Assembly: GCF_023055435.1 (NCBI RefSeq)
Contig: NW_025963802.1
Coordinates: forward strand, 7,998,001 to 8,062,000
Reading direction: 5' to 3'
Origin: Haliotis rufescens
Taxonomy: Eukaryota
DNA: 64,000 nt
The notes beneath the pieces were generated by a model. That model had not been told where the DNA came from. It saw nothing but the letters and a program-made list of their open reading frames with translations, and ran no database searches. A program made the position numbers and the translations under genes. Position 1 is the stretch's first letter; each line of letters starts with the position of its first letter. Positions 9,783-64,000 of the stretch are shown piece after piece.

Positions 9783-12700
9783 ATGGGACATTCTCTCTGT
9801 AAACTTGCAACACTCGGGTGGAAGAAAGATATGAAAATTATTATATTTGGTGCGTAGATCTACTGTTTTACATACTTAGAGCCAGAGACCATATATGGTC
9901 TCTGTTAGAACATTCATTTCAGATGGCACAACTACCGATGCCCCTAGTTCATGAGTAGCCGAGCATGTGGAGCAACAGTAGTCGGCGAGATCTGATAGTC
10001 AAGAAAATGTTTTCTTGACTGGCCCAATGCCAGGTATCGCGGCTAGCTCAACAGTAGGGTCAAGTTTTGACGATTTAGACCCCGGGCCCTTTCTCCATAG
10101 ATCATGACAGTTGACAGTTCTGTGTTTTATTTAAATTTGTTACAGAAAAATATATGATTTAATTTGACGTTATGAGAAACTTTCAGTTGGAATGGTTAGT
10201 GTGCTGAGTTTAATGTTCATAGTGCTAATATTTGCGTTACCCTACTGTATTTCCTTTGTATATCGAGCCTTTATATATAAAGCCCCTGCTTACGTTGATT
10301 TTTTTAAATTGATAGCCACTGCTAAGGATTAAATTAACCTTATTTACGTGCCAATGCGATATTTGAATTTCCAATGTTACAAAATGTATCCAGTTCTGCA
10401 TAGTTGTACCTAACCATGATGATACTTGCACTTTATGAGCTGAATCTGAGGGTAAGTTTTTTAAATGAGCTACGCCCTCCAAACAAGAGCTGCGTGAACA
10501 ATAGCCAGAGCCGTGATTGTGTCTGCATGACTAGCTGAGAGCTCTGTTGGGACCCAATTGACATGCAAGACAATAACATACTGACTAGGCTACTGTTGAG
10601 TGAGTGAGTTTGGTTTTACGCCGCTTTTAGCAATATTCCAGCAATATCACGGCGGGGGACATCAGAAATGGGCTTCACACATTGCACCCATGTCGGGAAT
10701 CGAACCCGGGTCTTCGGCGTGACGAGCGAACGCTTTAACCACTAGGCTACCCGACCGCCCCAGGCTACTGTTGAACCTCATCACTCATGTCAACTACAGG
10801 CAATGATTTCTCCCCACTGCATTTGAATACCATACATTTGACCAAACTCAGCTAATCCCTATCCCTTCTTGTCACAGATGTGAACAGAATAAGGGTAGGA
10901 TTGCTAATTTTATTTTAGAGCCAACCTCTAATTGGCTGCTTTTCACTACTGTATAACCATGTTCCCTTGGAATTCTTCAAAGCCGGGGACATTACCATGG
11001 TTACAAATAGAACTAGAAGTCACCTCATTGAAGATCAACATGAGGCTGTAGAATAGAAAAGTCCATTCCATGCATCATGTGCATATCTGCTTTGGTCTGT
11101 CATCTTTAACATGTTCAACACAATCTTCTTTCTTGCATTAGGTCTTGATGCTGCTGGAAAAACAACCATTCTGTACGTCCTAACGCAAGGAGAAGTGGTG
11201 ACAACCATTCCTACAATTGGTATGTCTGTATGTTTGGATATGTTTTTTGTGCCCCGACCTAAAAGGGCGGGTGGGTATATTGTTATACCAAGGAATTTCC
11301 TCCCTCCTTCTGAGGACATTTTTGTGTGTGACCTATAACCATGATAACTTAAAAACTACTTCATAGATTTTTTTCAAATGTGGTGAACACCTTTTATACC
11401 TATAGGAGAGGTGCAGCTTTTAATTCATTTTTTTACTTGCACATATATGTGATCCATAACTAGAAAACTGTTGCATGGATTATTTTCAAATTTAGGGACC
11501 AGTTTCCATACTAATCATGCTAATAGAAGAGATGCAGTGCAAAGTTTAATTTTGATATGTGTATTTTCTGAAAAAAATATGATTCTTTACCAGTGCTTGC
11601 ATGTCTTGAAATTAGAATATTTTTTTAACTTTTACATTTATGCAAGCTATAACTGAAAAAATACTTCACGGATTCTTTTAAATTGGGGATACAGTTTCTA
11701 TGCCATTAGGAGAGGTGCAGTGCAAAGTTTGATTTCATGTTTTGAACTTAGAAGTACATCATGTATGTTGGAATCGAAGTCGAGGGTATTAGTGAGCCCT
11801 GCTCAGTTTTTGTCTTGTTTGTTTAGTATTTTGATAGGTAAGTAGCAGCAGTGATATTAACTTGACTTTTGTCTCAGAATATCAACACTCTAACAGTAGG
11901 CAAGTACAAGGCTATGTTTATTGTGTAAATATAATCATGATAATGCTATGTAGATACGTTATGACTTTGGTTATGTTGGAGAGTGAGTTTGGTTCAATCA
12001 TGTTAATGTTTAATGTTTAATGCCACACTCAGATTTATTCTAGCTATATGACAGTGGTCTGTAAATCATCCAGTCTGGACCTGACAATCCAGTGATTGAT
12101 ATCATGAGCATTGATCCACGCAATTGAGACACGATGACATGCAGCAACCAAGTCAGTGAGTCTGATTACCCAGGTCCTTCAGTCGCCTCTTACAACAAGC
12201 ATGGGTTGCTGAAGACCAATTCAAATCTTCACGGGTCATGATGACTCTGGGTCAGAAAAGCAGATCCCAACAGAGCATATACACAGCATGTTCTATTGTG
12301 AGGGAGTTGGGTTTAACGCCGCTATTAACAGTATTCCAGTTATATCACGGCGTGTCAGCTTAATGTGGGAGGAAAGCCCGAAGTGATGCAGGTCTCAGAC
12401 GTTTACCACTTCGGTGAAACCCAGAGCACAGGTATGGTGCTGACAAAGCTATAAACATAATCGGGGCGAATTGGGATTCGAACCCACAATCCTAGGTTTC
12501 TTGCATGCCCAAGGGACGTAACTCTGCACAGCGAATCGCAGCGCCTTAGACGACTGGGCCACCCGTGCCCCCTGTTCTAGTGTGACGCCCATGTTATCTT
12601 GTACATATTGTGTGTTGACATGATCAGTGATGATAGGTATTAGTGCTATTTTTTGCATGTCATGTAAGAACCCATGACATAACCATGCAAATTTATACAC

Positions 12701-15700
12701 TGTGTTTTATTTCAGGTTTTAATGTGGAGCATTTTACACATAAGAATATCAGAATAGTGGCGTGGGATGTTGGCGGAAGGGACAAAGCTGTAAGTAGTTT
12801 TAATAACATCGCTCTGGACAATTGTCAAACACATTTACCATGTAAAAAGAGTTAAAAAATTGCATGTTTAGGGCTTTTCACCAGTTCAGGAATGTGGATT
12901 GTTGAATGAATTAGGTTTTCACTGTAATCCATTTTGACAAGGCAGTTGTTTGTTTCCTTGCCTAAAGTGAAAGACTTGATGGTTTCACTGTTTAGGCTAC
13001 TGATTTCTGATAGGGCTGGGACGAGTCCTGATTTACTACCTAGGTACCCGATCCCCTACTACCCGACCCTACCCTACCTGGGTACCCACTGCAGGTCTCA
13101 AGAGTTGAGAACAAAATGTCTGATTGGGAAATGTTTTACCGCAGCCCTGGGCAAAACTCTTTAGGTACATGTATCAAACGATCAGATCGTGCGTACACTG
13201 AAGTTAACTGAAGCTTTATCTGTAGTCAGACATGTACAAGTCAAAAGGAATGTCTGCATCGTAAGACGGAAAGGCGAACTTTAGCATGTTTAGCAACTTG
13301 TAGTTTAACCACTGAGCTATAATGAGTTTTTGTCATTAAACAATATATCAGGTGACTAGCCACAGGTCTGGGTAGTACTGTGGGTACCCGGGTCCTACTC
13401 AGGACCCACCCGAGTACCCGAGTTTCCCGTCCCAACCCTAATTTCTGAAATGAATAGACAATGACAATAACAGTCCCTCTGTGCAGTTTATGTTTATTCC
13501 TGCATCACAATGGCTTTTGAGACAAGGAATTCTGAAGCAATTATTAGATCATGGCTGAATACTATAGAATATGAACTGGGTATATAAAACAATGAAAATA
13601 AATATTGGGTAAGATATAATTTTGGCCACATTATATTTTCCCAAATATTGAAAGAAGAAATGTTCAGCATTAAACTTGTGTTACAATGGTTACATATGAG
13701 ATGTCTGATGCAGCTTGTCCAAACTGTACATCGTACAAGTACTGAAAAGGTTTGCGCCATGAAATTATTGTGAGTGGCTAACAATTGCCTTAACTTAACC
13801 TGGAGAGATTTTTGACACCCTGATAAGATTGACAAAGGACAAAGCTACTTATAACTTTTGCATTTCATTTTTGTAAGTAGGAAGGGGCTTGGTTCAGTTT
13901 CAGTTTATTTCTCTGAAAAACGACAAATGATGGTACAAGAGTATATATATGCATACACACAAAATCGAGGCATACGAATGTTCACTCGGTGTACATGTAA
14001 TATATAAAAAATAAAGACCATGTTAGTCCAACATCTTCTTTTTATCAGTTTCAGACATAGTACTTTGACTTTCTCATGACAGCTCTTCAGTGTAACTGAC
14101 AATGACATATGAATGATGTCATACTTATGACAACGTCATAAATTACAAATGTGACGTGATAATGTATTTACACACTCCAGCGAAGACACCACATAATATA
14201 ACAATTGTAGAGAGACATTTGAAGTAAAATCTACAGTATATTGTAAAGTAGATTGTGAGGTATTTCTACAAATACTGTAGATTTTAACCCTTGCCATCGG
14301 TGAAATGATAACCCAAGGTCAGTCAGTAATTTTTTAACTATAGGCACATGTGTGGTTGTAGTTGACAAGGGAGGTTGGAGTAGGGTTTATTCAACAGTAA
14401 AGAACTGATTGGCTTATGTCTGGACTAGTCGGTGACAGCTAAGTGAACTTTCCTGATTAAACTTTTGACAATGAGGACAATGTGTAATTGAGTATATTAT
14501 TTGATAATTCATGCACTGGCTGGTTTGACAATGTGTAGAAGTAAACAAAAGAAATATGCATCTTTACATTATTTGTTTCTTGTTGGTCTGAAAAATAAAT
14601 GCATCATAAAACTATTGCAAGTGTGTGTCATCCCCACATTTTGCAATACTGTCTTGCTCGCAAAACTGTCCAGATTTACCATGTTTACAGTATCAAGTAT
14701 AGGGGTGTCGCGATAAATTGAAATATCGATTAATTGCTGTTGGTAAGCACTTAAAGTCAATAAATCAATTGTTAAATCAGTTTCCAATCAATAGTATCGA
14801 TTTCAGTTAGGAATATTGATAATTTCTATTGTACATGCAATGCTGTTCAAATTTGTTTTTCTTTTGATCATGAGTGCTAGTAATTTACACATGATAATGT
14901 TGAAGTTTCTTTTTCTTAAATTATTTATAGGGTAAAGAAAAAACAAGTCAGTCATATCTCAAACTTAACTTTTTATTTGTTGTTATGGTTATCACATTCA
15001 AAGGAAACTACAGTTCCAAGGTTTAATTCAACTCTAAAATCCATCTAAAATGATACACTGAAAACTATCGATATTTATCGCAATAGTTGTTTGGAATATC
15101 AATAGTTATCGCAATAGTTTCTTTCAATATCAATAGTTATCGCATTAGTGATTTCCAGACCAATAGTCACCCCTAATCAAGTATGGTCCTTGTCTGAAGA
15201 TACCAAAGAAGCAGTAGTTTGTTCAGTCCTCCTCACTTCCTCTTTTCCAGCGGAGCTTGTACCGACACTACTTCCCTGGAGCATCAGCACTCATGTTTGT
15301 CATAGACAGCACTGATCAGGATAGGCTTGAAGAGATGACTGATGAGGTGAAGAGATTGGTGATGGACCCAGAGCTGGGAGAGGCTGTGATTCTGCTCCTG
15401 GCCAACAAGCAGGACATGGGCTCGGCCATGAGTGTGGAGGAGATCAAGGAAAAAATGAACTACAACAAATTATGTGAGCAAAGACCTTCTGGGAAAAGTG
15501 AGTGTGTTTCTGTTTTAGTTTTAGTCAAGATCTGCAGGCAATGTCAGCTTAGCTTATGTCATGCGTCTCTGTTGGTTGTCATATAAGCAGTATGAGCTTG
15601 TGTCATCGGTCTGTCTGTCAGTTGTCATACAAGCAGTGTGAGCTTATGGCATGGGTCTGTTTGGCTGTTGTCATACAAGCAGTATGAGCTTGTGTCATCG

Positions 15701-17017
15701 GTCTGTCTGTCCGTTGTCATACAAGCAGTGTGAGCTTATGTCATGGGTCTGTTTGTCTGTTGTCATACAAGCAGTGTAAGCTTATGTCATTGGTCTGTTT
15801 GTCCGTTGTCATACAAGCAGTATGAGCTTATGTCATGGGTCTGTTTGTCCGTTGTCATACAAGCAGTGTAAGCTTATGTCATTGGTCTGTCTGTCCGTTG
15901 TCATACAAGCAGTGTGGGGTGATGTCATTGGTATGACATTATGTCATCGGTCTAAGCCCGTTTGTTGTGATACAAGCAGTATGATGTCATGGGCCATGAA
16001 TGAGAGTGGCACCACAGTGTTCTGTTTACTATGACGTCGCTGCATTGTGACCTTGTTGGCTGACATCATAGCTCTGAGACGTCTTCATTGGAATGTCGCT
16101 ACATATTAGATATTGGGGGAAGTATGTATTAAATGCACACATGTTCATCACTTTGCCAAAACATGTGCACACTAACTGAGAAATAAGGTTTTACTCATAA
16201 GCTGTCAAAATATCTACTGTGAGTGTTTGCTCTACATGCCTCGATTGTAAATTGTGAACTTTGAGTGAATTTTTCCCCCTGGTGACCCAAGGTAGAGAAG
16301 CTTTTGGCACTGTGAACCTATTCTTCCCCAGAATCTAGGCTGGTCATTGGTTTGAAATGTTAATATCGACATTAAAGTATAACGATACAGCAATCAATAA
16401 TATAATTAAATTCTGGATGTGTATATATAAAATTTATCTACATGTATGTAGATCTGCAATTAGTCAATGTAGTGCTAAATATGATCTACACTGAGCAGAT
16501 AAATGTTTAAAATTGAATATTCTGCCTTCTCATTGTCCTTCCTGTCTATAGTACAATGTACAAGTATCCACGGATACTTGGGGCCCTAGAAATCTAACTG
16601 GAATAACCATTATTAAGAGGCAAACATACTGCTTATGTCTAAGTGCTTATGACAAATAGTGATCATGACAACAATGACAATTATATCCATGCTGACTGAA
16701 TATCATATTGTGGTCAATATTGATGGAAAAGTGACATTTCTTTTTCAGAAATGAACATATTTGGATGTTCAGCAGTGACGCCTGAGGGTCAAGGTGACTT
16801 GCTTAAGGCACTGGATTGGCTGAGTGAAGAATTGGTGCCGAAGTCTGGCTACTGGTTCCAGTCCTGGTATTCATCTGAAACTGGGAAAACGAAGGACAAA
16901 ACTAATAAGGCTCCATCCCAGGAAGGCTCAGATAGTGACAAGAAACCCTGGACATTCTCATCTTATGTGAAGGGGACGATTACAACTTTCAAAAGCTTGC
17001 TGCCAAGATTGTGGTAG
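9783..17017 (+). CDS. Arf/Arl-like small GTPase 1, 244 aa; exons 9783-9849, 11142-11219, 12716-12789, 15251-15497, 16749-17017
   Basis: Joined [37 protein letters not shown]...TTIPTIGFNVE...WDVGGRDK...ANKQD...CSAV. All introns are GT-AG, total 735 nt in frame. AATAAA at 17728. Confidence 0.93.
10600..10761 (-). mobile_element. tRNA-derived SINE, family B, with 13-bp TSD aggctactgttga
   Basis: Head ggggcggtcgggtagcctagtggttaaagcg...gggttcgattccc (A/B boxes) and tail gctaaaagcggcgtaaaacc+(ctca)n. Other copies near 7882, 23375, 24615, 26690, 27008, 30758, 34252, 39625, 42598, 49038, 56550, 56815, 60134, 63098. Confidence 0.9.
11245..11820 (+). mobile_element. Probable non-autonomous Helentron/HINE-like repeat in intron 2 of gene 1
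   Basis: T-run start with a GC-rich hairpin (gccccgacc...gggcgggtggg), internal diverged repeats (..cttca.ggatt..tcaaat..gg..aggagaggtgcag), and a ..cttgtt end. A similar start lies at 18085 (ttattatccctgccacgaag...gtccgtccatccgtc). Confidence 0.45.
12300..12572 (-). mobile_element. SINE family D copy
   Basis: Near full-length match to the 8050-8297 copy. Confidence 0.8.
13011..13440. mobile_element. hAT-type MITE, 430 bp
   Basis: TIR tagggctgggacg...cgtcccaacccta with a perfect 8-bp TSD atttctga (13003-10 and 13441-48). Confidence 0.9.
14700..15175. mobile_element. hAT-type MITE, 476 bp
   Basis: TIR taggggtg...caccccta with a perfect 8-bp TSD atcaagta (14692-99 and 15176-83) and subterminal atcgat/atcgca repeats. 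Confidence 0.9.
15540..15990. repeat. About 46-bp minisatellite in intron 4 of gene 1
   Basis: gtcatacaagcag recurs at 15670, 15716, 15762, 15808 and onward. Confidence 0.9.
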
Positions 17018-18449
17018 AACTTCATATGATAAAGAACTTTCTGTGATATGACTCTGGGGATTCCAGTTTAGAATTGAAACCTACGCTGGTCGTAAGAAGT
17101 GATTAAATGGACTGATTGCTCAGGCTCGCTGACTTGATTGATAGCGTGTCAGTGTGTCCCCGATGGTGTGGATTGTTTCTCATCATATCAATTACGGGTT
17201 TGTCTGGCCCAGACCACTTACGTTATTGTTCTGCAAGTCGGGTTGAGTGATGGAGGAAGCATGTGCAAACTATGGTTTAAGGAATAAGATTTTGTGATGT
17301 ATATTTTATGTGCATTTCAGTTACTTTTACTTTCATCAATAGTGATACGTAAACATCAATTGGCCAACCTTGCTCCTTTCCTGAACGGCAAAGAAAGGTC
17401 TCTTTTCAGCAGAGTGACCTAAACATCACTGGACATAGCTTATTAATGTTTATTTGCATGCCCTCAAGCAAGACATATACGTTTGTCATACACCTTTTCG
17501 TGTATTAGAGCTATGCCAGTAGAAGCCGGAGCACCGGTCAAATTCTGAAAGTAGGCCTAATATACTTCATTGCACCGTTTCCTTGCTGTATCCAACTGTG
17601 ATATTGTTTGTTGTTTATCATGTTTATGGATACAATTGTATTTGGATATTGATTGAACATTTGTTACTGTTGTTGAATATCATATTTTATATCAGGGTGT
17701 TTTATGACATGACAACTATAACCATGTAATAAAAGAATATATTTTATGCACTGTCTTGCAGTTGTGACTAAGACTAAATCTTACTGGATCAAGTTCCTGT
17801 CATTTACCCATCAGATGACACAATATATACTACTCAAAAGAAATTAAAGAACACCTGATTCTTTCCTATTCATAGTTAATCTGTCATGGGTGTTCTTTAA
17901 CTTCAACTGAGTATATTTGTAATTATCAAAGTGTTTGTGTGTGTATTTTACTCCAAATGTTGTATTTTTTTTCTAAAAAACCCTTTTTTTTAACTGATTT
18001 CTTTTTACCTATGCCATGGTTTGTAGGAAACATAATTTGACCTTTTCTTGTGTGCAATATTGTGTGCCAAGAATACAGTTCATTATTATCCCTGCCACGA
18101 AGTGTGAGGGGGATATAGGAATGGGGGCTGTCTGTCCGTCCATCCGTCACATTTCATTTCTGGAGCATAGTGTTTAATATTTTACAGTGAAACTTTGCAT
18201 ATGTATCAAACACATGCTGAACTAGTGCCTTTTGATGTTTTGGGGTTTCTAAAAAAATAATAACCCTGTTTTCTTGTTTCTATATAGCTTAAACAATTGA
18301 GCACCTGTTTATGAATGAGCTCCTAAACATTCGTTACATTCTCGGTAGAGAGTAGACTGGTTCCTGTTTCCGTTTGTTCCTACGACAGACTGGAAAGCAG
18401 AGCAAGAGCAGCGACACCAAGCGGAGGATCCGGGAACAGAGAGCTCCGC

Positions 18450-18510
18450 CAAGCTCCTTCCCAGCGCGTGACACCTTCGTTACACACGGGCTATTGCTGT
18501 GAGGAGCTTG
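18450..18510. mobile_element. Tiny TIR element (caagctcc...ggagcttg) with 10-bp TSD agagctccgc
   Basis: TSD at 18440-49 and 18511-20. Relatives at 36589-36672 (9-bp TSD) and about 9520-9628. Confidence 0.7.
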
Positions 18511-19618
18511 AGAGCTCCGCGAAAATAAGGGAGATAACGCTTAAGTAAAGAGACAACTCTATTGAAGTGCCAGACAAAGGCACGCCGCTAGTTAAAAATA
18601 AGCAACACGTTAAATTACCTGCATGTATACTGTTCACTGTGGCACTGGATATATACTCTCACTCAGCAGCCCATTTTATCAATTATAATTTGTCTGTTGG
18701 ACACTCATTGATTTACAGACTGCTGGCATAAAATTACTATGTCTGGCGTAAATGATAACCTCACGAGCCCACTCACGTGTTGAAGGGTATAGGCAGACAG
18801 ACTTTATTCAGTATTTTAGGCCCAAAGCCAATAATACAAACAAGATGGAAAATAATTAATATTATTTACATGCTGAATAAACGGCTGGAATGCATAACAC
18901 TTTGTTCCAGGTATAGATGATTTGCTTAATTCTGATCTTTAGTCCTTGACAAAGGTATTTAATCAAACATTTAATAATATGGATATTGTCAATGAGGAGT
19001 ATATTATGACTATGCTGAATGTCATCAAATTGATTGTCGCTACACCCACTATTTTCGAGTGTTTTACGTCAATCAGCAACTCCAGCTTATCCACAACGGC
19101 CTGTAAGTAATAGAGTGAGTGAGTTAATTAGGTTTAACGCTGCTTTGAACAGTTTCCCAGTTATATCACGGCGCATCAGGTTAATGTAGGAGGAAAGCCC
19201 GAAGAAGTGCAGGTCTCAGACGTTTACCACTTTGGTGAAACCCAAGAGCACGGGTACGGTGCTGATAAACCCATAAACATAATCGGGGCAAACTGGGATT
19301 CGAACCTACAACCACGGGTTTTTTGGCGTGCCCAAGGAACACAACATTTGCACAGCGAATTGCAGCGCCTTAGACGACCGGGCCACCCGTGCCCCAATGA
19401 AAGTAAAAATCTGGCCAGGCTAAAGAGGGCCCAGTTGCTTAAAGCGATCTTAGAGTCTGTGTTAGAGTATGGGAGTTACGATCGTCATAGCACTAGGATC
19501 GCTTTGTGCAAGTGTACCCAGAGGTTGATAGAATGAGCATCAACCTACACCTTCGGGGCACGATGGCACACAGCCAGGTCACACCATCCTATCCCTATAT
19601 TCCACCTCTTGCGATAAG

Positions 19619-23564: not shown

Positions 23565-23565
<1 letters not shown>

Positions 23566-23620: not shown

Positions 23621-23622
<2 letters not shown>

Positions 23623-23945: not shown

Positions 23946-23988
23946 ACTTCCGGCCACCGTGGATTTGACAGGTAAACAAAACCACGAG
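23946..23988 (+). promoter_or_regulatory. Conserved upstream module of Arf-like gene 2 (ETS ACTTCCGG, TGACAG, forkhead-like GTAAACA)
   Basis: acttccggccaccgtggatttgacaggtaaacaaa is identical at 30974 upstream of gene 3. Confidence 0.65.
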
Positions 23989-24227: not shown

Positions 24228-27200
24228 ATGGGGCAGTATTTCTGCAAACTTGGATGGTTTAAGAAGAAGGATGTTAGACTGCTTATGCATGGTAGGTATA
24301 ATTTCATTTCGTTTTGTTCCTATTGAGTCATTACCATATAGTTTCGTTTGGAAAATATCGAAAATATTGGTAGCTCAAGATCCGAACATGAAGCACTAGC
24401 TCCGAAGTCGAAGCTATGTACTGCTTATATGTTACTATCAGGCATACATACTTGTTTCTAAAACATGACCATACGAATTGGGATGGGATTTAAGAAATAA
24501 AATGTTCCAGTTAAACTGTAACAAATAGACTCTCATTTCGGAGAAAAAATGTTTGCCTTGACACAGTGACTTATACATTGTATAATAATAGTATCTCCAT
24601 GCTGTACCATATAGAAGGAGCGGTCTAGTGGTTAAAGCGTTCGCTCGTTACGCCGAAGACCCGGGTTCGATTCCCGACATGGGTACAATGTGTGAAGCCT
24701 ATTTCTGGTGTCCCCCGCCGTGATATTTCTGGAATATTGCAAACAGCGGCGTAAAACCATACTCACTCACTCCACTGTACCATATAGCTTTGTTTTGAGC
24801 CCCCGTTGAATTATGCGATGCTAAATATAGCAGTCCAACCAACGTAGACTCGTGTGCGCGAGAAATTCGTTGGGAAATATCTGATAAGAAGTTGATATAG
24901 TGGCGTCACTTGCCGGGGGACGCCATGGTAGCGAACAGGTCGTGCAATCGAGGGTATTTGATCTCAACAGATTAGATAAACTGACAATGTCACACGCATA
25001 GTTGGATAGCGAGTAGGTGAGTTCAAAATTAAAGTCGCATCGGCAATATAGCGACTGCAACAAGGAAGTGTATTTTCTTGAGTTGAGAACCAGATAACAC
25101 GTACAAATAAACTGTGTCTCATCTGTGTTAATTGGTCGACCTGAAACCAACCGTATAGTCAGGATTTTGTCCTCATTGAACGAGCTAAACAACAATCTAC
25201 AACTCATGATAAAACACAATTCTACAGAACTGAGTGATGTAAGAATGTTCTTTTTATGCGGGGTGATGCATGGTCAACCTTATTTACTTCCAGGACTCGA
25301 TGCTGCAGGGAAGACCACGATAATGTACATGCTTAAACTCGGAGAGGTTGTTTCAACCATTCCAACAATTGGTGAGCCTGATTGGAGATAACTTTCTGAA
25401 TTTATAAATGTTTAGAATATCCCTTGAGGGCCGACATTATATAATGAGCGAAGCATTTCAAATTCTGATTAATGGGCTTATTAATACAGAACAAGTAACT
25501 CGTAACTGTCAGCTTCCCGTCATCAATCACTGCACTGTACTGCACAGCTCATTAATAGGGTTTTGTTTGTTTGCTATATGACGGCCGTCTGTAAAAAATT
25601 GTCTGGACCAGACAATCCAGTGACTTACATCAAGAGTATCGATCTACGTAATTGGAATGCGATGACATGCATCAACAAAGGCAGCGAGTCTGACTACGCG
25701 ATCCCTTTAGTCGTCACATACGACAAGCGTAGTCGCCTTTTACGGCAAGCATGGGTTGCTGAAGACCGATTCTACCTGGGTTCTTCACGGGTCCAGCGAT
25801 AGGATGGCCTTATAAAAATATATATATTCATCAAGAATCTGACAACATCCATTCTATACTTCTGTTTGCAGTCATAAAGACCAATTCAAACCCGCATATT
25901 CATGGGTTTCATGGTAGGGAAAATTTTCGATTGAAATTTAAAATGGTTCTTAATTCACGCTTTGTTCGAAATTTCAGGTTTCAATGTGGAGACGGTTACA
26001 TACAAGAATATCAACATCACGTCCTGGGATGTGGGTGGCAGAGGCGCTATCGTGAGTTGGGATGCTCATTCCTGTATTTTTTGTTTGTCGATTGTGAAAA
26101 ATAATGTGCAGATCACTTAAAACTCATGCTTTCATTTGCATTTTTAGCTCAGGTTAACCGGAAGTCCATGTGAGCTTATGTCGTTGCTGTAATCCATGGT
26201 CCCGCCATCCAACCGTCATAAATATTTCGACCAAGCATATGATGCTTACTGTCTTTTTTTTTCAGCGCCCCCTGTATCGCCACTACTACCCCGGCACCGA
26301 CGCCGTCCTGTTCGTGGTTGACAGCAATGACCTGGAACGTATGGAGCAAGCCAGGGACGAGCTGGTACGTTTGCTTGAGGAAAAGGACCTCAAGGACACC
26401 GTCTTCCTCGTACTGGCCAACAAGCAGGACCTGCCAGGCGCCATGACAGTTCCAGAGGTTGCCAAGGCAGTGGACTTCCAGGGGATACTGAAAACTCATA
26501 GTAAGTTGAAAGAATAATATAAGTGTAAGATTGTTATAGTTTTGTAAACTTATACTTTGAAATGATCACCAGACTAGACACTTTGAACATCCTTGTACAT
26601 GTTCGGACCCATGCGTGTATGTTCATAGTGGGAACTTTGGGAACTCCCTCTCACACCTTTGACATATTGAACTATTCTAACAACGAATGAATGAATGAGT
26701 ATGGTTTTACACAATATTCCAGCTATATCACCGTGGGAGACAGAAGAAATTGGTTTCACACATTGTACCCATGTGGGCATCGAGCCCGAATTTTCAGAGT
26801 GACACTCAAACGATTTAACCAGTTGGCTGCCCCACTGCCCCTCTACCATCGATCAAAAAGTTACTGACTATCTGTACGGAGTGAATAAATGGTATAAGTC
26901 CCGAGGCTTGCGGACACATGTGTTTCTCAATCACATAAAGACATCATCTTAGTCAATCTATTGTTTGAAAGACGTGGCATAAATTTGCCTGTGACACTAT
27001 AAACATTGAGTGGGTGAGTGAGTATGGTTTTACGACGCTTTAGCAATATTCCAGCAATACGCCGGCGGACACGAAAAATGGGCCTCACACATTGTATCAA
27101 TGTGAGGAATCGAACCCGTGCATTCGGTGTGACGAGCCTAACAACTAGGCTACCCGACCGCCCCCTATAAATATTTGATGACATAACTTTTGTTGACATT

Positions 27201-27768
27201 TAAGGTGAGGTGAAATACCATGCCGCAGTTTAACATGAATACCCCACTCAGACACAGTATACTGACTCCAAACCGACCAGTCCTTGTTTTAGCCCCTTAA
27301 TGCCGAGCGCCAGACAGGGTAACAACACGTACCATCTTTTAACGTCTTTTGACGTATGACGCGGCCGGGGATCGAACCCCGGACCTTCCGCTCTCCGGGC
27401 GGACGCTCTACCACTAGACCAAGGAAGCGGTCTGACAGTTAAGCTGTTGTAGGGGAACTACAGTGCCGTGACGCTATTGTTTAGTTATGATAAATGAAAC
27501 ACATTAAAATGCTCACTATTGGCTTATTCTAGGAGCGACCATCATAGGATGCAGTGCTATCTCAGGTGAGGGACTTAATGACGCCCTGCACTGGATGTCA
27601 CAGGAATTTGCCGAGGGGAGGTCACGGCAAAGCCCGGATGCTAACCCTAGTGACCCGGAAACAGATGCAACCTCGGAGAAGAAGACTGAAAAGTCTCCCT
27701 GGTCTCTGTCCACTTACATGAAAGGAACACTGGAGTCTCTGAAAGCGTTTTTACCGAAACTAGGTTGA
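24228..27768 (+). CDS. Arf/Arl-like small GTPase 2, 228 aa; exons 24228-24291, 25294-25371, 25978-26051, 26266-26500, 27533-27768
   Basis: [33 protein letters not shown]...STIPTIGFNVETV...[17 protein letters not shown]...ANKQD...CSAISGEG...AFLPKLG. GT-AG introns, 687 nt in frame. AATAAA at 27811. Confidence 0.95.
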
Positions 27769-30700: not shown

Positions 30701-30966
30701 ACGAGGTCGGGTGGTCAAACACACAATAATAATCACGAAGCTCTCAGAATCTGTAAAGAGTGGGTGAGTATGTTCTTACGCCGCATTTCGCAATATTCCA
30801 GCAACATCCCGGCGCGGGACACCAGAAATGGGCTTCACACATTGTACCCAGAATCTGTAAAGAACTTTCAGCTTCGGAAACAAAATATGTCAAAGCATAT
30901 ATCCTAGCGCACGTCCACGGATATTATACGTGCGCTTCCATGATAAAACTGTGCAGATTGTACACC

Positions 30967-31016
30967 GTGACGTACTTCCGGCCACCGTGGATTTGACAGG
31001 TAAACAAACTCACGAG
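30967..31016 (+). promoter_or_regulatory. Conserved upstream module of Arf-like gene 3 (half-CRE + ETS + GTAAACA)
   Basis: gtgacgtacttccggccaccgtggatttgacaggtaaacaaactcacgag. A diverged version lies at 47424 and 61515 upstream of genes 4 and 5. Confidence 0.65.
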
Positions 31017-31126: not shown

Positions 31127-33957
<2,831 letters not shown>

Positions 33958-43427: not shown

Positions 43428-43475
<48 letters not shown>

Positions 43476-46536: not shown

Positions 46537-49500
46537 TAAATCACTAGATTGTCTGGTCCAGACTCGATTATATACAGACCGCCGTAATATAGCTGGAATA
46601 TTGCTGAGTGCGGCGTTAAACTACAAACAACAACATGCACAACATTAATTACTGAAGCCGAAGGGTGTATGGACGTAAGACATTATAACTGTGACAGGTT
46701 CTGTGAATATAGCATCGTGGTGTTCATGATAAAATGATGGCCAAACTCATAAAATATATAACTGAAAGATTAAACGAATAAACTCATTTGTCTCATTATT
46801 ATTTGAGCCGTGAAGATCCGCGAAAGGAATAGGTCTTCAGCAACCCATGCTTGCCGTAAGAGTCGCCTATGCTTGTCGTAAGAGGCGACTAACGGGATCG
46901 GGTGGTCAGGCCCGCTGACTTGGTTGATGCATGTCATCGAATGTCAATTGTCTGGATCGATGCTCATGATATCAGTCACTGGATTGTCTGGTCCAGACTC
47001 GATTATTTACAGACCGCCATCATATAACTTGGCTATTTCTGAGTGCGGTGTCAAACAACAAAGAAACAAAAGCTAATGTCGATATGTATTGAGGCGATTG
47101 ATCAATACACAATTTCATGATCAATTCGTGTTTGCATTCCATTCAATGCTTGTTTTAATACTGTAGCTGTAATACCGGGTAACACACCATACGGTCCTTG
47201 TTTATAGTTACGGACAGAGAAAGTAGATCTATATGTTTTCTGTCACAAATGAAGAAAAAATACATTGTTTGAATCAAACCCCAGACTCGTCTTCACTCAA
47301 CGTTATCACCTTGTCTGGTTACAGTGGATGTTGCATCTATGATCATGATTAACGTAGTAGATAACGTACTTTGACCTAGTCCAGATCAAAATCCGGTATC
47401 AATAACAGTCAACGATAAATAGCGTGACGTACGTCCGCCCAGCGTGTTTGTGCCAGGTTAACAACTCCACGGTGTGGGGTCGGTATATATATATATACTT
47501 GTACACACCAGCCTACTTGGCGATATATTCAAGTACTATTGATGAGGACCGGTCGCATTACGAAACTACGGTGTCTTGAACTTCCAGCTGACACAGGCTA
47601 CGGTCGACAGACGGAATGGGGCAATATATTAGTATGCTGCCATGGCTAAGGAAGGAAGTGGTAGTTCTCATGCATGGCACGTATATAGTACTTATTACCT
47701 TCAAGATAGTCATCGAGTCGTATTTAAAGACTGGAAGACCAAAAGTAACACGTGACCTGAATACGTCATATATTAGATTTAATATAATAATTAATTGGCC
47801 TACCTAGTTAGATCTGTGTCTTTGAAAGATTGAGCATGGGTTTATCTTTTATCCATATTCTTTTATTTTTCAAACGATAACCGCTCCGTTTAAAAAAGAA
47901 GTGACATATTTTATTTTCCAATTTCCGCATGATCACAATTTCACGCAAAAAAATGTTTAAAACTCAGATTTTACAGCCAGGTCTTGAGGAACAGAAAAAC
48001 GTTAATTAATCCACGAACAATGTTAAAAGGAATCCTATTTAGTTAGTTAAGGGACTGTAGCGTGTTCCATAATTATAAAGTAAACAATGTACCATCTTGG
48101 TCTTTCTGCTGATTTGAGTTTGAATTGCAGTGCGTGACGTTTAAAGGTATTCTACAAAGGTTTACAATTACGTACACCATTCAGACCAGTGTTTTTTAAC
48201 CAGGCCGACTTACTTAAACTTCCTTGTTTTTTACTATTGAAATAGCAGTTAGCTTATGACCTTTCATTAAAACTCTGTTTATTTCACCCGACTGATAATT
48301 ACTGCTTTAAGCAATCATTATAGCAACGATATTATATTATTGATAATTATTGTTTAACGCCGCTCTCAGCAATATTCCAGCCATATGACGGCGGTCTGTA
48401 AATAATCGAGTCTGAACCAGACAATCCAGTGATTGATCGATGAGCATCGATCCACGTAATTGCGATAGGATGACATGCATCAACCAAGTCAGCGAGACTG
48501 ACTACCCGATCCCATTAGTTGCCTTTTACGCCAAGCATAGTCACCTTTTAGGGCAAGCATGGGTTGCTTAAGACCTATTCTACCCTAGATTTTCACGGGT
48601 CTATATATTGATTACAAAAGCAGAAAATTAATGGTAAATTATGGTAATGGTTCTTGTTTTAATCTATTTTTAATGTTTCTTGAAAGAAAATGGAAAACTA
48701 CACACGGGAAATTCAGAATGACAACCCCTTTGTACAAATGCATATACATATTATCACATTACATGTATATTATAAAGATATCATTATATCATACAAATAA
48801 CCAAACGAACTTAATGTGATCATGGTCGCTTTATCCAGTCACATGTGTCCTTATATTTCAGGGCTTGATAATGCAGGGAAATCCACGCTGTGTTACCTGC
48901 TAACATCACGACTTCACGGCACACCGCCAACCCGCTGTGAGTAGGACCCTGCAATACAATGTATTTAAATGATAAATTATAAGTCTGCATTTCACTGGGG
49001 TCAGTTTAACTCTCCAAGTATACATCGAAAGAAATATGGGGCGGTTGGGTAGCCTAGTGGTTAAAAGTGTTTGCTCGTCATGCCGAAGACCCAGGTTCGA
49101 TTCCCCACATGGGTACAATGTGTGAAGCCCATTTCTGGTGTCCTCCGCCGTGATGTTGCTGGAATATTGCTAAAAGAGGCGTGAAACCACTCATCACTCA
49201 CTCACTCACTCACTCACTCACTCACTCACTCACTCACTCGAAAGAAATATTAATCTGTGAATGCCAATAAACTCACGCCAGCTTCTACAAATATAAAACT
49301 CGTGTTTTTTCGTTCATTTATATTTCACCTCATTTGTTATGTATTAACTGTATAGAACAATTCGTGTTGTGTGATGTTAATGTAGTACATACCGAAATGT
49401 GTTTGATGTTTTACGCCCCACTCAGCACTATTCCTGCTCTATGACGGCGGCCTGTAATTAATCGAGTCTGGACCAGACAATCCTGTGATTGATATCATGG

Positions 49501-49950
49501 GTATCAATCTACACTTGGGATATGATGAGTTGCATCACCCGACCATCCGATCCGTGAGTCGGGTTGCTGAAGACGACTCAAGCCCGGATCTTCACGGGTT
49601 AGATAACTGACTTATGCATCGTTTGTCGTGACTGTATGCCATGCCAGTAATAACGATGGTTTATGTTTCAGATGATGCCAAAAAGACATTAGTCTACAAC
49701 AACATCAAGTTGACACTGATTGACGGGGGGCAGAGAAGGCGTGGGGTGAGTTATGTCACATGGTTTAAGATCAACTACTCAAATAACACAGCAACACAAA
49801 TAAGCTTTGGAATTACATAAAATGTAACGGACTAAAACGGCTAGGTTCGGGATGTTTCAGTATTGCTGTACTTATACGTCGACACAATGTGTGATCTACA
49901 TTAATTTTTCAGGTCGCCTTTTAAGACAAGCAAAGCATATGACTTATTCT
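46537..49950 (+). repeat. Segmental duplication copy 1 (matches 60618-64000)
   Basis: Near-identical collinear sequence including introns and shared SINE insertions, offset about 14.08 kb. Confidence 0.95.
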
Positions 49951-51048
49951 GACCAAGAATCCATTTGATTGCCATTGGTCCTTTGCGAGTGCCTGACCGT
50001 GTGTGTTTGGTGTCCTGATGATGCTTGTTGGTATGTCGCCATCAAGTCTACGTTTGTTGTTTTCACCAAAGCGGTAAACGTCTAAGAGTTCATCGCGTCG
50101 GACATTCGTCGGACATCAAGCTGACGCATGCGCTGAAATACTATTCAACGTTGCTTTGAAACAAATAACCCCACTCCCAAGTTAGGCCTAGACACTGTAA
50201 TGCATAATGGTAGTAGCCTGTGACGGCTGGAGAGCAGCGCCCCGCCGCATCAGGCCGCTGTTCATGAGATGATTGTCCCCCATCCCCAGTATCCCCGGCA
50301 CAACTACAAACACATCGACGTCGTCCTGTTCATGGTAGACAGCAACGACCGGGACCGTATACAGGAGGCCCAGGACGAACTGAGACTTGACGCTCAGGAT
50401 GCAGCACTCAAGAACACCCCCTTCCTTGTCCTCGCCAACAAGCAGGACCTGCCGGCCGCCCTGACAGCACCAGAGGTTGCCGAGGCAATGGACTTCCAGG
50501 AAATACTCAAAGCTCACAGTAAGTTGCAGATAAAATTATTCTTATACTGTTTTCTTTCTTTTCCATCATGTTGTTTGTTTGTTGTTTAACGCCGCACTCA
50601 TAATAAACATTATTAACGTAAACATTGTCGCCGTCAGAGTACACATGGAACCACAAAGAGAGTTCGCTATATTCGTTATTTCGTCATAAGCGTGTTCGTT
50701 ATATCCATCAATTCTTTTAGATAAAATAGACAGCAAATGGCCGGGACAAAATCCTGTTCGTTATATCCGTCAATTCGTTGTAAGCGTCTTCGTTATAAAC
50801 GTAGTTTACTTTACATGCTTCCAGGGGCCAACATTATAGGATGCAGCATTCTCTCAAGGTCAGGCATTAAAGACGCCTTGGATTGGCTGACACAAGAATT
50901 CCAGAGTCCCTGTAAAGGCTCGAAAGCTTCCCCTTACAAGGAAGAGATCGATGAAGCCATAGTTGGGAAACGCGAGGCTTGGTCCATTTTTACCTACATA
51001 AGAGACATATTTGAATATTTGAAAAGATACCTACCTAAATTGAAATGA
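47616..51048 (+). CDS. Divergent Arf-like protein 4 (possible pseudo-GTPase), 220 aa; exons 47616-47676, 48862-48936, 49672-49745, 50290-50518, 50825-51048; intron 1 has a GC donor
   Basis: MGQYISMLPWLRKEVVVLMHGLDNAGKSTLCY..HGTPPTRYDAKKTLVYNNIKLTLIDGGQRRRGYPRHNY..ANKQD..CSILSRSG..RYLPKLK. 663 nt, no stop or frameshift, same intron phases as genes 1-3. Confidence 0.8.
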
Positions 51049-51469: not shown

Positions 51470-51810
51470 GATTGTACATTATATGATCGAGTGTTGACAT
51501 CGTGCACAGATTGGATTGCACATTATATGATCGAATGTTGACATCGTGCATAGATTGGATTGTACATTATATGATCGAATGTTGACATGGGTGCACAGAT
51601 CGGATTGTACATTATATGATCGAATGTTGACAAGGGTGCATAGATTGGATTGTACATTATATGATCGAATGTTGAAAAGGGTGCATAGATTGGATTGCAC
51701 ATTATATGATCGAATGTTGACATTGTGCACAGATTGGATTGTACGTTATATGATCGAATGTTGACAAGAGTGCATAGATTGTATTGTACATTATTCGATC
51801 GAATGTTAGT
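51470..51810. repeat. 44-45-bp minisatellite, about 8 units
   Basis: atatgatcga recurs at 51481, 51525, 51569, 51614, 51659, 51704. Confidence 0.93.
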
Positions 51811-55059: not shown

Positions 55060-57464
55060 TATTGGACTGGTTTATGGTATTTTTGGTTTGGAGAATAATG
55101 GGATATATAAAATACATTACTGCTTTGTCTTTTTTTTATCTATTCCTTTCTGTTACAATGGATGAAACGTTTCTGCGTTTGGCAAAGCTAAACAAAACTG
55201 TTAAATCAAGACAATTCTCACACTCATAGCCAGTTTACATACACTATCGCCAGGTCTGGAGGGGATCAAAACACGATATATTGGTTGTCACGTGAAGTAT
55301 AAGAAAAAGGGCGGGGGTACGTGTCTGATGCATATTTATGACACCTCAATAAGAAACACCGAAAGATATCCAGTAACGACCGAGATATTGCAGCATGTTT
55401 AAGTATCTGCAATCTACCCTACACAATTCACATCCGAATTCAGCTCGCGTACCCGGTTCAACTTCACACGAAGCTATACTTACACGCGCTAATACTTAAG
55501 TAAACAAACAAGACGTCGCAGACTATCACGTGACCTAATTCCTTGATAGCGGTGTTGAGTCTTAGATTGCGTGTTAACCTTCTTCCGGGTAGCCTGGCCT
55601 GCCCCGACCCATGGGTAGTGTTTGAACACCTTGTTCAGTTTTGTTACATGCAATCGACAGTACATATGCTGCCGTCGACGAGGTGATACGTATTTTATGG
55701 AGGACGTGAGTATATAGTGGTCACATTAAGTCTTTCCATAAAGTTGTGTGTGACTAGGAATCAAGTAGTAGTATTGGCGTTGGCAAGGTGGAGATTTCGC
55801 TCATTCAAACGTACTCATTCTGATAATGTAACCTTCACCTTAACCTTATGACCAGCTAAAGTCTTACCCATAGTAAGAAACAGACATTCACGTAGTCTGT
55901 CTCACAGTCTCTGAAGCATAATCTCTTCCTTCCATCCAGCCCTTACTGTTACCTTATAGCTCTAAACGAAGTCTAGATTTTCCATAGGTTCAGGATCTCC
56001 TTTTCATTTCAAATGAATTTTTTTGTTTCGACGAAAATAATTTACTTTCAGAGACTAATCGTAGGTCTAAATGTAAGAGCAAGGCACATTGTATACAAAT
56101 GTTAAGGCTGAAATAAGGGTATGTTTAGAAATAACGTGAAAATATGAATACATCGAGACATATTATATCCTAATTATGTCCTGAATACATGACACGTGTT
56201 ATGGATAACAACTTGGTAAAGGGGCAAGGAGTAGCCCTGAAAGGTCGTTACAAAGAATTATGAACTTGTTATCAAGAACAAAATGCCATGTATTCGTGTT
56301 CTTCAAGCTTCCAAATGCCTATCGAAGATTTTGGGATTATATAATTAAGATCCTCAAAGTAAAACATTTGGTGTTAAATGCTGCAGTTTGTTTCATTGCT
56401 TTATGAGTGAGTGCGTGAGTGAGTATGATGTTACGTGTAGCATTCCAGTCATAACCAGGATTCGAACCTGACAAGCCAAGTCATTAGCCACTGTATCAGT
56501 TTCCCCAACACACCACTCCCTATTGTTGTAAGCTACCTTAATGGGATGATGAGTGAGAGAGTGAGTATGGTTTTACGCCGCTTTTAGTAATATTCCAGCA
56601 ATATCACGGCGGGGGACACTAGAAATGGGCTTCACACATTGTACCATGTGGGGAATCGGACCCAGGTCTTCGGTGTGACGAGCGAACGCTTTAACCGCTA
56701 GGCTACCGCACTGCTCCTTATGTGATAATGTAATTAGTTGTAAAAAGATAGATATAACATTCCTGTCACTGTTACCAGATAAAGACATGCACTAACACGG
56801 CCTTAATTCGTTGTGAGTGAGTGAGTGAGTTAGTATGGGTTAACGCCGCTTTTAGCAATGTTCCAGCAATATCACGGCGGGGGTACACCAGAAATAGGCT
56901 TCACACATTGTACACATTGGGCAAGTAAAACGGTATCTACGAGCTCGTAAAGGGCACGAGTGTAGTAATTTATTTATTGCTCGCTTAAACTCAGCAAATT
57001 AAACTACCCGGTATCTAAATTCAACGTCGAAAAAAAATGTTGTGTCAACGTTCGTTGAAATACACTCGTTATAAGAACGGTATCAAAACGCGCTTTCATA
57101 TTTTGATAATGTGTAACAGACAGGCAGACATATCCATATCCTAATTTAAACAGAATATTTTAATATTGGGGATTGAGTAGCCCATGTGGTGCGACCAGAA
57201 TCGTCCAGTGAGTTGAGCATTAAATAGCATGGACGAGGCAGTCTGTAATCATCCAAGAGAAGTAACCCTCGTATACACAAGTTGGAGAGGGGCTCTACTA
57301 CACTCTCCCAAAGCCATAGCCTTGTTTGTTTTACCCGTTTTAAGAAACCATTTGTTCGTTTTATACTGTACATCTTCAATAATGTTACAATATGTGGTGC
57401 CCCATAATTCTGCACCGTAACAAACTATAGACACAATCATAGCATTAAATATTTTAAATAAATA

Positions 57465-60617: not shown

Positions 60618-63600
60618 TAAATCACTAGATTGTCTGGTCGAGACTCGATTATATACAGACCGCGGTAATATAGCTGGAATATTGCTGAGTGCGGCGTTAA
60701 ACAACAAACAACAACATGCACAACATGGCGTGTTCTAATTTCTGAAGCCGATCGAAGGGTGTATGGACGTAAGACATTATAACTGTGACAGGTTCTGTGA
60801 ATATACCATCGTGGTGTTCATGATAAAATGATGGCCAAACTCATAAAATATATAACTGAAAGATTAAACGAATAAACTCATTTGTCTCATTATTATTTGA
60901 GCCGTGAAGATCCGGGAAAGAATAGGTCTTCAGCAACCCATGCTTGCCGTAAGAGTCGCCTATGCTTATCGTAAGAGACGACTAACGGGATCGGGTGGTC
61001 AGGCTCGCTGACTTGGTTGATGCATGTCATCGAATGTCAATTGTTTGGATCGATGCTCATGATATCAATCACTGGATTGTCTGGTCCAGACTCGATTATT
61101 TACAGACCGCCATCATATAACTTGGCTATTTCTGAGTGCGGTGTTAAACAACAAAGAAACAAAAGCTAATGTCGATATGTATTGAGGCGATTGACGTTCA
61201 CAATTGCATGATCAATTCGTGTTTGCATTCCATTCAATGCTTGTTTTTAATACTGTAGGTGTAATACCGGGTAACACACCATACGGTCCTTGTTTATAGT
61301 TACGGACGGAGAAAGTAGATCTATATGTTTTCTGCCACAAATGAAGAAAAAATACATTGTTTGAATCAAACCCCAGACTCCTCTTCACTCAACGTTATCA
61401 CCTTGTCTTGTTACAGTGTATGTTGCATCTATATGATCATGATTAACGTAGATAACGTACTTTGACCTAGTCCAGATCAAAATCCGGTATCAATAACAGT
61501 CAACGATAAATAGCGTGACGTACGTCCGCCCAGCGTGTTTGTGCCAGGTTAACAACTCCACGGTGTGGGGTCGGTATATATATATACTTGTACACACCAG
61601 CCTACTTGGCGATATATTCAAGTACTATTGATGAGGACCGGTCGCATTACGAAACTACGGTGTCTTGAACTTCCAGCTGACACAGGCTACGGTCGACAGA
61701 CGGAATGGGGCAATATATTAGTATGCTGCCATGGCTAAGGAAGGAAGTGGTAGTTCTCATGCATGGCACGTATATAGTACTTATTACCTTCAAGATAGTC
61801 ATCGAGTCGTATTTAAAGACTGGAAGACCAAAAGTAACACGTGACCTGAATACGTCACATATTAGATTTAATATAATAATTAATTGGCCTACCTAGTTAG
61901 ATCTGTGTCTTTGAAAGATTGAGCATGGGTTTATCTTTTATCCATATTTTTTTTATTTTTCAAACGATAACCGCTCCGTTTAAAAAAGAAGTGACATATT
62001 TTATTTTCCTATTTCCGCATGATCACAATTTCACGCAAAAAATGTTTAAAACTCAGATTTTACAGCCAGGTCTTGAGGAACAGAAAAACGTTAATTAATC
62101 CACGAACAATGTTAAAAGGAATCCTATTTAGTTAGTTAAGGGACTGTAGCGTGTTCCATAATTATAAAGTAAACAATGTACCATCTTGGTCTTTCTGCTG
62201 ATTTGAGTTTGAATTGCAGTGCGTGTCGTTTAAAGGTATTCTACAAAGGTTTACAATTACGTACACCATTCAGACCAGTGTTTTTTAACCAGGTCGACTT
62301 ACTTAAACTTCCTTGTTTTTTACTATTGAAATAGCAGTTAGCTTATGACCTTTCATTAAAACTCTGTTTATTTCACCCGACTGATAATTACTGCTTTAAG
62401 CAATCATTATAGCAACGATATTATATTATTGATAACAATTTCTTTGTTTAGTTCGTTTGTTGTTTAACGCCGCTCTCAGCAATATTCCAGCTATATGACG
62501 GCGGTCTGTAAATAATCGAGTCTGAATTCATTCATTCATTCATTCATGCATCAACCAAGTCAGCGAGCCTGACCACCCGCTCCCGTTAGTCGCCTTTTAC
62601 GCCAAGCATAGTCACCTTTTAGGGCAAGCCAGGGTTGCTGAAGACCTATTCTATCCGAGATCTTCACGGGTCTATATATTGATTACAAAAGCCGAAAATT
62701 AATGGTAAATTATGGTAATGGTTCTATTTTTAATGTTTCTTGAAAGAAAATGGAAAATTACACACGGGAAATTCAGAATGACAACCCCTTTGTACAAATG
62801 CATATACATATTATCACATTACATGTATATTATAAAGATATCATAATATCATACAAATAACCAAACGAACTTAATGTGATCATGGTCGCTTTATCCAGTC
62901 ACATGTGTCCTTATATTTCAGGGCTTGATAATGCAGGGAAATCCACGCTGTGTTACCTGCTAACATCACGACTTCACGGCACGCCGCCAACCCGCTGTGA
63001 GTAGGACCCTGCAATACAATGTATTTAAATGATAAATTATAAGTCTGCATTTCACTGGGGTCAGTTTAACTCTCCAAGTATACATCGAAAGAAATATGGG
63101 GCGGTCGGGTAGCCTAGTGGTTAAAAGTGTTTGCTCGTCATGCCGAAGACCCAGGTTCGATTCCCCACATGGGTACAATGTGTGAAGCCCATTTCTGGTG
63201 TCCTCTGCCGTGATGTTGCTGGAATATTGCTAAAAGCGGCGTGAAACCACACTCTCACTCACTCACTCACTCACTCACTCACTCACTCACTCACTCACTC
63301 GAAAGAAATATTAATCTGTGAATGCCAATAAACTCTCGCCAGCTTCTACAAATATAAAACTCGTGTTTTTTCGTTCATTTTTATTTCACCTCATTTGTTA
63401 TGTATTAACTGTATAGAACAATTCGTGTTGTGTGATGTTAATGTAGTACATACCGAAATTTGTTTGTTGTTTTACGCCCCACTCAGCACTATTCCAGCTC
63501 TATGGCGGCGGCCTGTAAATAATCGAGTCTGGACCAGACAATCCTGTGATTGATATCATGGGTATCAATCTACACTTGGGATATGATGACTTGCATCACC

Positions 63601-64000
63601 CGACCATCCGATCCGTGAGTCGGGTTGCTGAAGACGACTCAAGCCCGGATCTTCATGGGTTAGATAACTGAACTAAGCATCGTTGGTTGTGACTGTATGC
63701 CATGCCAGTTATAACGGCGGTTTATGTTTCAGATGATGCCAAAAAGACATTAGTCTACAACAACATCAAGTTGACACTGATTGACGGGGGGCAGAGAAGG
63801 CGTGGGGTGAGTTATGTCACATGGTTTAAGATCAACTACTCAAATAACACAGCAACACAAATAAGCTTTGGAATTACATAAAATGTAACGGACTAAAACG
63901 GCTAGGTTCGGGATGTTTCAGTATTGCTGTACTTATACGTCGACACAATGTGTGATCTACATTAATCTTCAGGTCGCCTTTTAAGACAAGCAAAGCATAT
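60618..64000 (+). repeat. Segmental duplication copy 2 (continues past the window)
   Basis: Matches 46537 onward; the junction falls inside a family A retroposon. Confidence 0.95.
61705..63806 (+). CDS. Divergent Arf-like protein 5 (duplicate of gene 4), partial; exons 61705-61765, 62922-62996, 63733-63806; rest beyond the window
   Basis: Same peptide as gene 4 exons 1-3. The only coding difference seen is a synonymous aca/acg. GC donor at 61766. Confidence 0.8.

Follow-up and report, generated by a model that had tools for sequence, protein, structure and literature searches.

A tandem cluster of probable Arl20-type Arf-like GTPase genes in the abalone Haliotis rufescens

The name Arl20 was given by Vargova et al. 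(2021, Genome Biol Evol; PMC8358228) to a set of Arf1-like genes that are found in unicellular holozoans and invertebrates and are absent from vertebrates. The hallmark of these genes is three specific intron positions together with one that is common to Arf1 and Arf4. Here we describe five neighbouring Arf-like GTPase genes, g1 to g5, on a stretch of 64,000 nucleotides (nt) from the abalone Haliotis rufescens (NCBI RefSeq assembly GCF_023055435.1, contig NW_025963802.1, here C24, positions 7,998,001 to 8,062,000 of the forward strand; the window). We find that these genes are very likely members of Arl20, and that their features were inherited rather than being abalone inventions.

Arl20 sequences from Capsaspora, two choanoflagellates, Amphimedon, Adineta, Lottia (two genes), Capitella and amphioxus are given in the supplement of PMC8358228. 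All 15 of the published sequences that we compared have Arg at the position of Arf1 Gln71, and all 15 carry a C-terminal extension with an aromatic and hydrophobic end. The main text of that paper does not mention glutamine, catalysis, switch II or amphipathic character, and does not discuss the Arl20 tail. Our literature search on Arl20 turned up PMC8358228 alone, and within the abalone literature that mentions ADP-ribosylation factor we found nothing on the window genes.

The window genes resemble LgiArl20a and LgiArl20b of Lottia gigantea in having an Arf1-like G domain, an MG start, a WDVGGR switch II, a C-terminal extension of about 40-60 amino acids (aa) with an aromatic/hydrophobic end, and four introns, one of which is common to Arf1. 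However, Lottia has two Arl20 genes, whereas the abalone has an Arl20a orthologue on C357, four b-like tandem paralogue types and a recent fifth copy. In addition, the Arf switch I sequence and the glycine of DxxG are missing from g4 and g5, which is the case in none of the 15 published sequences compared. With canonical Arf1, Arf4 and Arf6 the window genes share the fold, 55-57% identity, the NKQD motif, a myristoylation-type N-terminus and the intron within PTIG/F; they differ in the replacement of Gln71 by Arg, in length (220-244 versus about 180 aa), in a tethered C-terminal helix and in three intron positions.

ARF family members without the switch II Gln needed for canonical hydrolysis are known: ARL10, ARL13A/B, ARL15 and ARL16 have been discussed as atypical GTPases or pseudoGTPases in a review (PMC12722892) that omits Arl20 because humans lack it. 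The window genes likewise belong to the ARF family and lack this Gln, but they fall into another orthology group and have an Arg, kept in all 15 published Arl20 sequences compared, within a switch II that resembles Arf1 in other respects. The IRG and GIMAP expansions are also tandem GTPase paralogues, some with altered catalytic motifs, yet they belong to an unrelated GTPase class; the abalone cluster, unlike them, has a small copy number that is stable between species and is under purifying selection, and we found nothing that ties it to immunity. By itself the locus is ordinary: a few conserved tandem genes from an ARF subfamily that already has a name. What makes it useful is that it draws attention to Arl20, a family with no studied function whose Arg-for-Gln replacement and tail have gone without comment in the main text that named it.

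Five neighbouring genes with Arl20 characters

A six-frame motif scan of the window located five P-loop exons reading GLD(A/N)AGK(T/S), all on the + strand, at 11141, 25293, 31886, 48861 and 62921. They belong to the following genes:

9783..17017, + strand: g1, Arl20-type, 244 aa, N-terminus MGHSLC; exons 9783-9849, 11142-11219, 12716-12789, 15251-15497, 16749-17017
24228..27768, + strand: g2, Arl20-type, 228 aa, N-terminus MGQYFC; exons 24228-24291, 25294-25371, 25978-26051, 26266-26500, 27533-27768
31127..33957, + strand: g3, Arl20-type, 228 aa, N-terminus MGQHLS; exons 31127-31196, 31887-31964, 32480-32553, 33187-33421, 33728-33957
47616..51048, + strand: g4, derived Arl20-type, 220 aa, N-terminus MGQYIS; exons 47616-47676 (GC donor), 48862-48936, 49672-49745, 50290-50518, 50825-51048
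61705..64000 (window end), + strand: g5, near-copy of g4, 220 aa, N-terminus MGQYIS; exons 61705-61765, 62922-62996, 63733-63806; the last two exons are in the adjoining stretch (L002, about 350-578 and 885-1108), and the gene ends about 1.1 kb past the window

Each gene has five exons with AG acceptors, intron phases of 1,1,0,1 and frames without stops; donors are GT throughout, except for the GC donor of exon 1 in g4 and g5. The g2 model is identical to H. rufescens XP_046365106.1 (P0126, "ADP-ribosylation factor 1-like"). Against RefSeq proteins of H. cracherodii, g1 (235/244 residues identical to P0189) and g3 (223/228 identical to P0138) align without gaps and at equal length, which speaks for all the splice sites chosen, among them the second of the two candidate donors of g1 exon 4. 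Exon 4 of each gene matches the Pfam family Arf (PF00025) with E-values of 1e-16 to 4e-23 (3e-20 for g1 and 4e-23 for g2), and the last exons of g1-g5 match no Pfam family. RefSeq already annotates at least g2, g4 and g5 as Arf-like. A preliminary description of this DNA had reported at least five same-strand paralogues with identical intron phases, intact frames and MGxxx(S/C) starts, and these models, which agree with RefSeq, confirm at the level of sequence that five neighbouring genes are real and intact. For alignments, substitution rates and trees we joined the exons into spliced proteins, and single exons or P0126 served as search queries.

The introns lie before GLDAAGK (phase 1), within PTIG/F (phase 1), after GGRxxx (phase 0) and before strand beta6 (phase 1). 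H. rufescens Arf1 (C2, L006) has only the phase-1 intron within PTIG/F in common with the window genes, its two others being placed after QNTQ(G) and after ANKQ. With three positions that have no Arf1 counterpart and one that has, the intron pattern is as published for Arl20. Another H. rufescens gene has four introns whose positions and phases equal those of the window genes:

C357:638694-645400 (L004): Arl20a, orthologue of Lottia Arl20a; exons near 2700-2780, 7395-7469, 8326-8565, 9069-9310

Its protein reads WDIGSRDK in switch II, has NKMD instead of NKQD, and ends in the tail DYCSRAYSAIKCLF. Switch II of g1-g3 reads WDVGGR, and g4 and g5 keep the Arg at the aligned position but read IDGGQR; the Arf1 and Arf6 loci of H. 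rufescens, unlike the window genes, read DVGGQ. After the xWL motif of helix alpha5 there follow 52-64 residues in the window genes versus about 10 in Arf1, and the tail ends in PW(S/T)xS(S/T)Y(M/V)KG...LP(K/R)L.

We built two maximum-likelihood trees of the window proteins and database proteins, with abalone Arf1, Arf6, Arl19-like and Arl20a sequences assembled from genome matches, of which Arf6 and Arl19 were outgroups. In whole-protein searches the top ranks were full of fused double-Arf gene models, and the informative matches were those that spanned over 85% of the query. In the trees, all proteins bearing Arg at the Q71 position fall into a single group apart from Arf1 (support 93/95), with members from Haliotis, Gigantopelta, four scallops, Solemya, Owenia, Glandiceps, five sponges and environmental sequences. 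The Arg label takes two changes on the tree merely because the search pattern missed the Argopecten motif WDLGGR. Within this group the Haliotis genes are a single group (92/78), adjacent to pectinid bivalve genes that occur once per species among the matches listed. In both H. cracherodii and H. asinina, each of g1-g3 is matched by one closest counterpart; for g4 there is one such protein in H. cracherodii. A profile search with the C-terminal exon yielded only three genuine clusters, which belong to Haliotis and Gigantopelta; another three candidates from this search (P0003, P0004 and P0006) proved to be unrelated repeat proteins and were rejected. The tail of P0038 alone found nothing outside Haliotis, which suggests that the tail evolves too fast for word-based searches.

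Protein features and a possible mechanism

In GTPases the switch II Gln positions the attacking water, and its replacement is expected to block canonical intrinsic hydrolysis as well as hydrolysis assisted by GTPase-activating proteins. The g1-g3 proteins have Arg at this position and keep the P-loop, the switch I Thr, DVGG, NKQD and CSA/SCA. An AlphaFold2 model of P0126, built with 64 aligned relatives, shows the Arf fold over residues 14-177 with predicted local distance difference test (pLDDT) values mostly of 80-96, then a disordered segment (181-209) and a helix (210-222). In Foldseek this g2 model was closest to the GTP forms of Arf1, Arf6 and Arl1 (template modelling score 0.93, root-mean-square deviation 1.6 Å), and GDP forms were poorer matches (3.6-4.4 Å). 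All window proteins share a C-terminal extension of about 50 residues with a predicted short helix at its end, whose hydrophobic moment is 0.32-0.42 in g1-g3 and 0.69 in g4.

These features are consistent with the following mechanism. With their G motifs kept, g1-g3 would bind guanine nucleotide. Membrane attachment may be through an N-terminal helix that is myristoylated and, in g1 and g2, possibly palmitoylated at Cys6. The usual way of hydrolysing GTP, which depends on Gln and is assisted by an ArfGAP, would be closed to g1-g3. They could then be long-lived GTP-state proteins, or their inactivation could follow another path. As modelled, the tethered C-terminal amphipathic helix could be a second membrane-binding or self-regulating element, perhaps folding back on the G domain. 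The Arg does not seem only to mark the loss of Gln: that it is kept in 15/15 published Arl20 sequences, from a filasterean to amphioxus, argues for a role of the Arg itself. Arl20 is an Arf1-derived branch of the ARF family that arose before animals and was lost in vertebrates.

Part of what the preliminary description had proposed for these proteins stands. Catalysis is probably altered, given the replacement of Gln71 in g1-g3 and the loss of the DxxG glycine in g4 and g5, and two possible membrane anchors are again predicted, the MG start with Ser/Cys at position 6 and the C-terminal helix after its disordered linker. The strong divergence it described for the N-helix and the switches is borne out in the N-helix (29-47% pairwise identity among g1-g3), but in the switches it applies to g4 and g5 only; among g1-g3, switch I is 75-91% identical and is the best-kept part of the protein.

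Some points weigh against the assignment to Arl20 and against the picture of the tail. The trees group the window genes with 31 proteins of Arl20 character from molluscs, an annelid, a hemichordate and sponges, and the published Arl20 references themselves lie outside the trees. The case for membership is thus built on common characters, and on database proteins that have them too. The match to the published intron positions derives from their number, the comparison with Arf1 and the paralogue on C357, rather than from a residue-by-residue check. The C-terminal helix of g2 has low confidence (pLDDT of about 52), and the hydrophobic moments of the g2 and g3 tails are merely moderate, at 0.32-0.35. 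Finally, the transcription of the genes and the exon 1 junction of g4 and g5 are predictions from the sequence. Despite these points we consider Arl20 membership, with inherited features, very likely. A wider proposal, which we offer tentatively and would not yet bet on, is that Arl20 is an ancient Arf class defined by Arg-for-Gln and a tethered C-terminal amphipathic helix, of which abalone has four conserved paralogues, with g4/g5 as a natural Arf-fold pseudoGTPase under purifying selection. The abalone cluster provides a natural series for the Arf fold without the catalytic Gln, from g1-g3, which are Arf1-like except for the Arg, to g4/g5 with their rewritten switches.

Conservation of the cluster and the g4/g5 pair

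The C-terminal exon is present at six loci in the 1.33 Gb genome, five in the window and one, a broken copy, on C1. The C1 copy of g1 (L001, C1:35243000-35252999, minus strand) is a segmental duplicate of window positions 10185-19000 with 85-94% identity; exon 1 would fall just outside the stretch compared. A 17-nt deletion in its exon 4 and the change of NKQD to NKPG indicate that this copy is a pseudogene. Between H. rufescens and H. cracherodii the proteins differ by 3.7% (g1), 3.9% (g2), 2.2% (g3) and 2.5% (g4) of their amino acids. Ratios of nonsynonymous to synonymous divergence (dN/dS, Nei-Gojobori) between paralogues range from 0.12 to 0.43, and the synonymous divergence (dS) is 0.5 between g2 and g3 and about 1 between g2 and g4, and reaches saturation in comparisons with g1. 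By these measures the window genes are intact and under purifying selection, and the cluster is old and stable rather than a fast birth-and-death array. Specific to abalone are the expansion to four paralogue types, the rewritten switches of g4 and g5, and the dead g1 copy.

The central inference of the preliminary description had been a different one: a lineage-specific, diversifying birth-and-death family, possibly serving cell-autonomous defence or stress, by analogy with IRG/GIMAP. Tandem genes on one strand with a common promoter could be expected of such a family, as could a dead copy on C1, the recent duplication of g4 into g5, the very long branch of g4 in the tree (1.35) and the presence of other GTPase arrays in the same genome. 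However, the features of the family are ancestral to Arl20 across holozoans, being present from Capsaspora and choanoflagellates to sponges, annelids, molluscs and amphioxus (PMC8358228). Turnover is equally hard to reconcile with only six loci in the whole genome, with single closest counterparts of g1-g3 in two other Haliotis species at 2-4% divergence from H. cracherodii (2.2-3.9% for the individual proteins), and with dN/dS below 0.45 for every pair with an estimable dS. A conserved Arl group that already has these features is the finding that the preliminary description had itself named as fatal to its central inference, which therefore fails, and we regard a defence array of this kind as highly improbable.

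In contrast to g1-g3, the g4 and g5 proteins depart strongly from Arf in the switches. From switch I through the interswitch to switch II, g4 is 34% identical to g2, versus 60% in the rest of the G domain (p = 0.005); for g2 and g3 the same regions are 68% and 74% identical. The segments read as follows:

Switch I into interswitch: PTIGFNVE in g2, PPTRYDAK in g4
Switch II: IDGGQRRRGYP in g4

The glycine of DxxG is lost, so that G3 reads DGGQ, and GLDNAGKS, NKQD, CSI and the tail are kept. The two genes lie in units of 14.1 kb each that are 96-98.5% identical and differ by indels and minisatellite length. Their coding sequences differ by one synonymous change in 663 nt, whereas 50 of 2737 aligned intron sites differ (1.8%; Fisher p = 3e-4). 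This contrast indicates that the coding sequence is constrained, and it does so for two loci and for two haplotypes alike. Residues 22-220 of both proteins equal the RefSeq models P0129 and P0130, which carry other first exons: these begin with MAKEGS (GT donor after 47660) or start within intron 1.

It could be argued that g4 and g5 are decaying, non-functional copies in which the intron 1 donor was lost and the switches were eroded by drift. Both have GC instead of GT after exon 1, the RefSeq models of both omit the MGQ exon, the DxxG glycine is gone and switch I is unrecognisable. Yet all five exons are open in both copies, the excess of intron over coding differences is not what decay would leave, and the H. 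cracherodii orthologue of g4 differs at only 5/199 residues, as few as for g2 and g3. Exon 1 of g4 is also about as similar to g2 as is the rest of the protein. A protein without exon 1 would lose strand beta1 of the fold. On both counts we favour GC-AG splicing in g4 and g5. Decay seems quite unlikely, and g4/g5 is probably a non-switching derivative and a candidate pseudoGTPase rather than a dead gene. A separate concern is that the duplication could be due to the assembly, two haplotypes having been laid in tandem where the true array has four genes. The heterozygosity expected in marine molluscs overlaps the 96-98.5% identity of the 14.1-kb units, and a single g4-type protein was found for H. 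cracherodii. Against this, both copies lie in one contig with regular spacing and their own flanks, RefSeq annotates two proteins, and indels and minisatellite length distinguish the units. We consider such an artefact unlikely, and treat g5 as a recent copy of g4.

Promoter box and other elements of the window

Comparing the 800 nt upstream of each ATG by Blast, we found a block of 35 nt that is identical in g2 and g3, the first 16 nt of which recur at g1 and, with three mismatches, at g4 and g5:

9475..9490, + strand: promoter box of g1, ACTTCCGGCCATCGTG, 308 nt upstream of the ATG; exact copy
23946..23961, + strand: promoter box of g2, ACTTCCGGCCACCGTG, 282 nt upstream of the ATG; within the 35-nt block identical to g3
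30974..30989, + strand: promoter box of g3, ACTTCCGGCCACCGTG, 153 nt upstream of the ATG
47431..47446, + strand: diverged promoter box of g4, ACGTCCGCCCAGCGTG, 3 mismatches, 185 nt upstream of the ATG
61522..61537, + strand: diverged promoter box of g5, sequence as at g4 (ACGTCCGCCCAGCGTG)

The pattern ACTTCCGGCCAYCGTG, allowing up to three mismatches, matches the window five times, where 0.4 matches are expected by chance; each lies on the + strand ahead of one of the five start codons, at a distance of 153-308 nt. Of the exact 16-mer the genome (1.33 Gb) has three copies, none of them outside this cluster. A family-specific box at every gene indicates that the copies have kept one promoter, and the shared promoter module of the preliminary description is thereby upheld. 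The core of the box, ACTTCCGG, presumably represents an ETS site, whose consensus it fits, and a TGACGT just upstream of the box in g3, g4 and g5 fits what we take to be a cAMP response element (CRE) half-site.

Elsewhere in the genome, C101:24947153-25249872 holds an Arl19-like ARF array of at least seven copies about 20 kb apart, larger than the expansion in the window. One of its copies (L007, C101:25154001-25164000) has an unusual P-loop, GLHVVGKT.

Between g1 and g2, at 20627-21196 on the + strand, lies an open frame of 189 aa that is rich in Lys and Glu, has an MGCIHS start of the myristoylation/palmitoylation type and gave no Pfam match. Three intact copies with 90% amino-acid identity are present in the genome, in the window, at C24:9079250-9079813 and at C1:35242341-35242907. 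The C1 copy adjoins the dead g1 copy, and the two were thus duplicated together. Between g3 and g4, at 38785-39558 (+ strand), a frame of 257 aa matches HTH_Tnp_4 and DDE_Tnp_4 (E-value 1e-39) and is a transposase of the Harbinger/PIF type. Positions 1866-2023 are a run of 158 N. The window also has four minisatellites:

1-523: 34-nt unit x 16, at the window start
15551-15932: 46-nt unit x 8, in g1 intron 4
51466-51807: 45-nt unit x 8, just 3' of g4
54032-55059: 20-nt unit x 51, between g4 and g5

A short repeat is dispersed through introns and spacers, at 10608-10742, 27018-27167, 30828-30920 and 56625-56740, and is probably an element similar to a short interspersed nuclear element (SINE).

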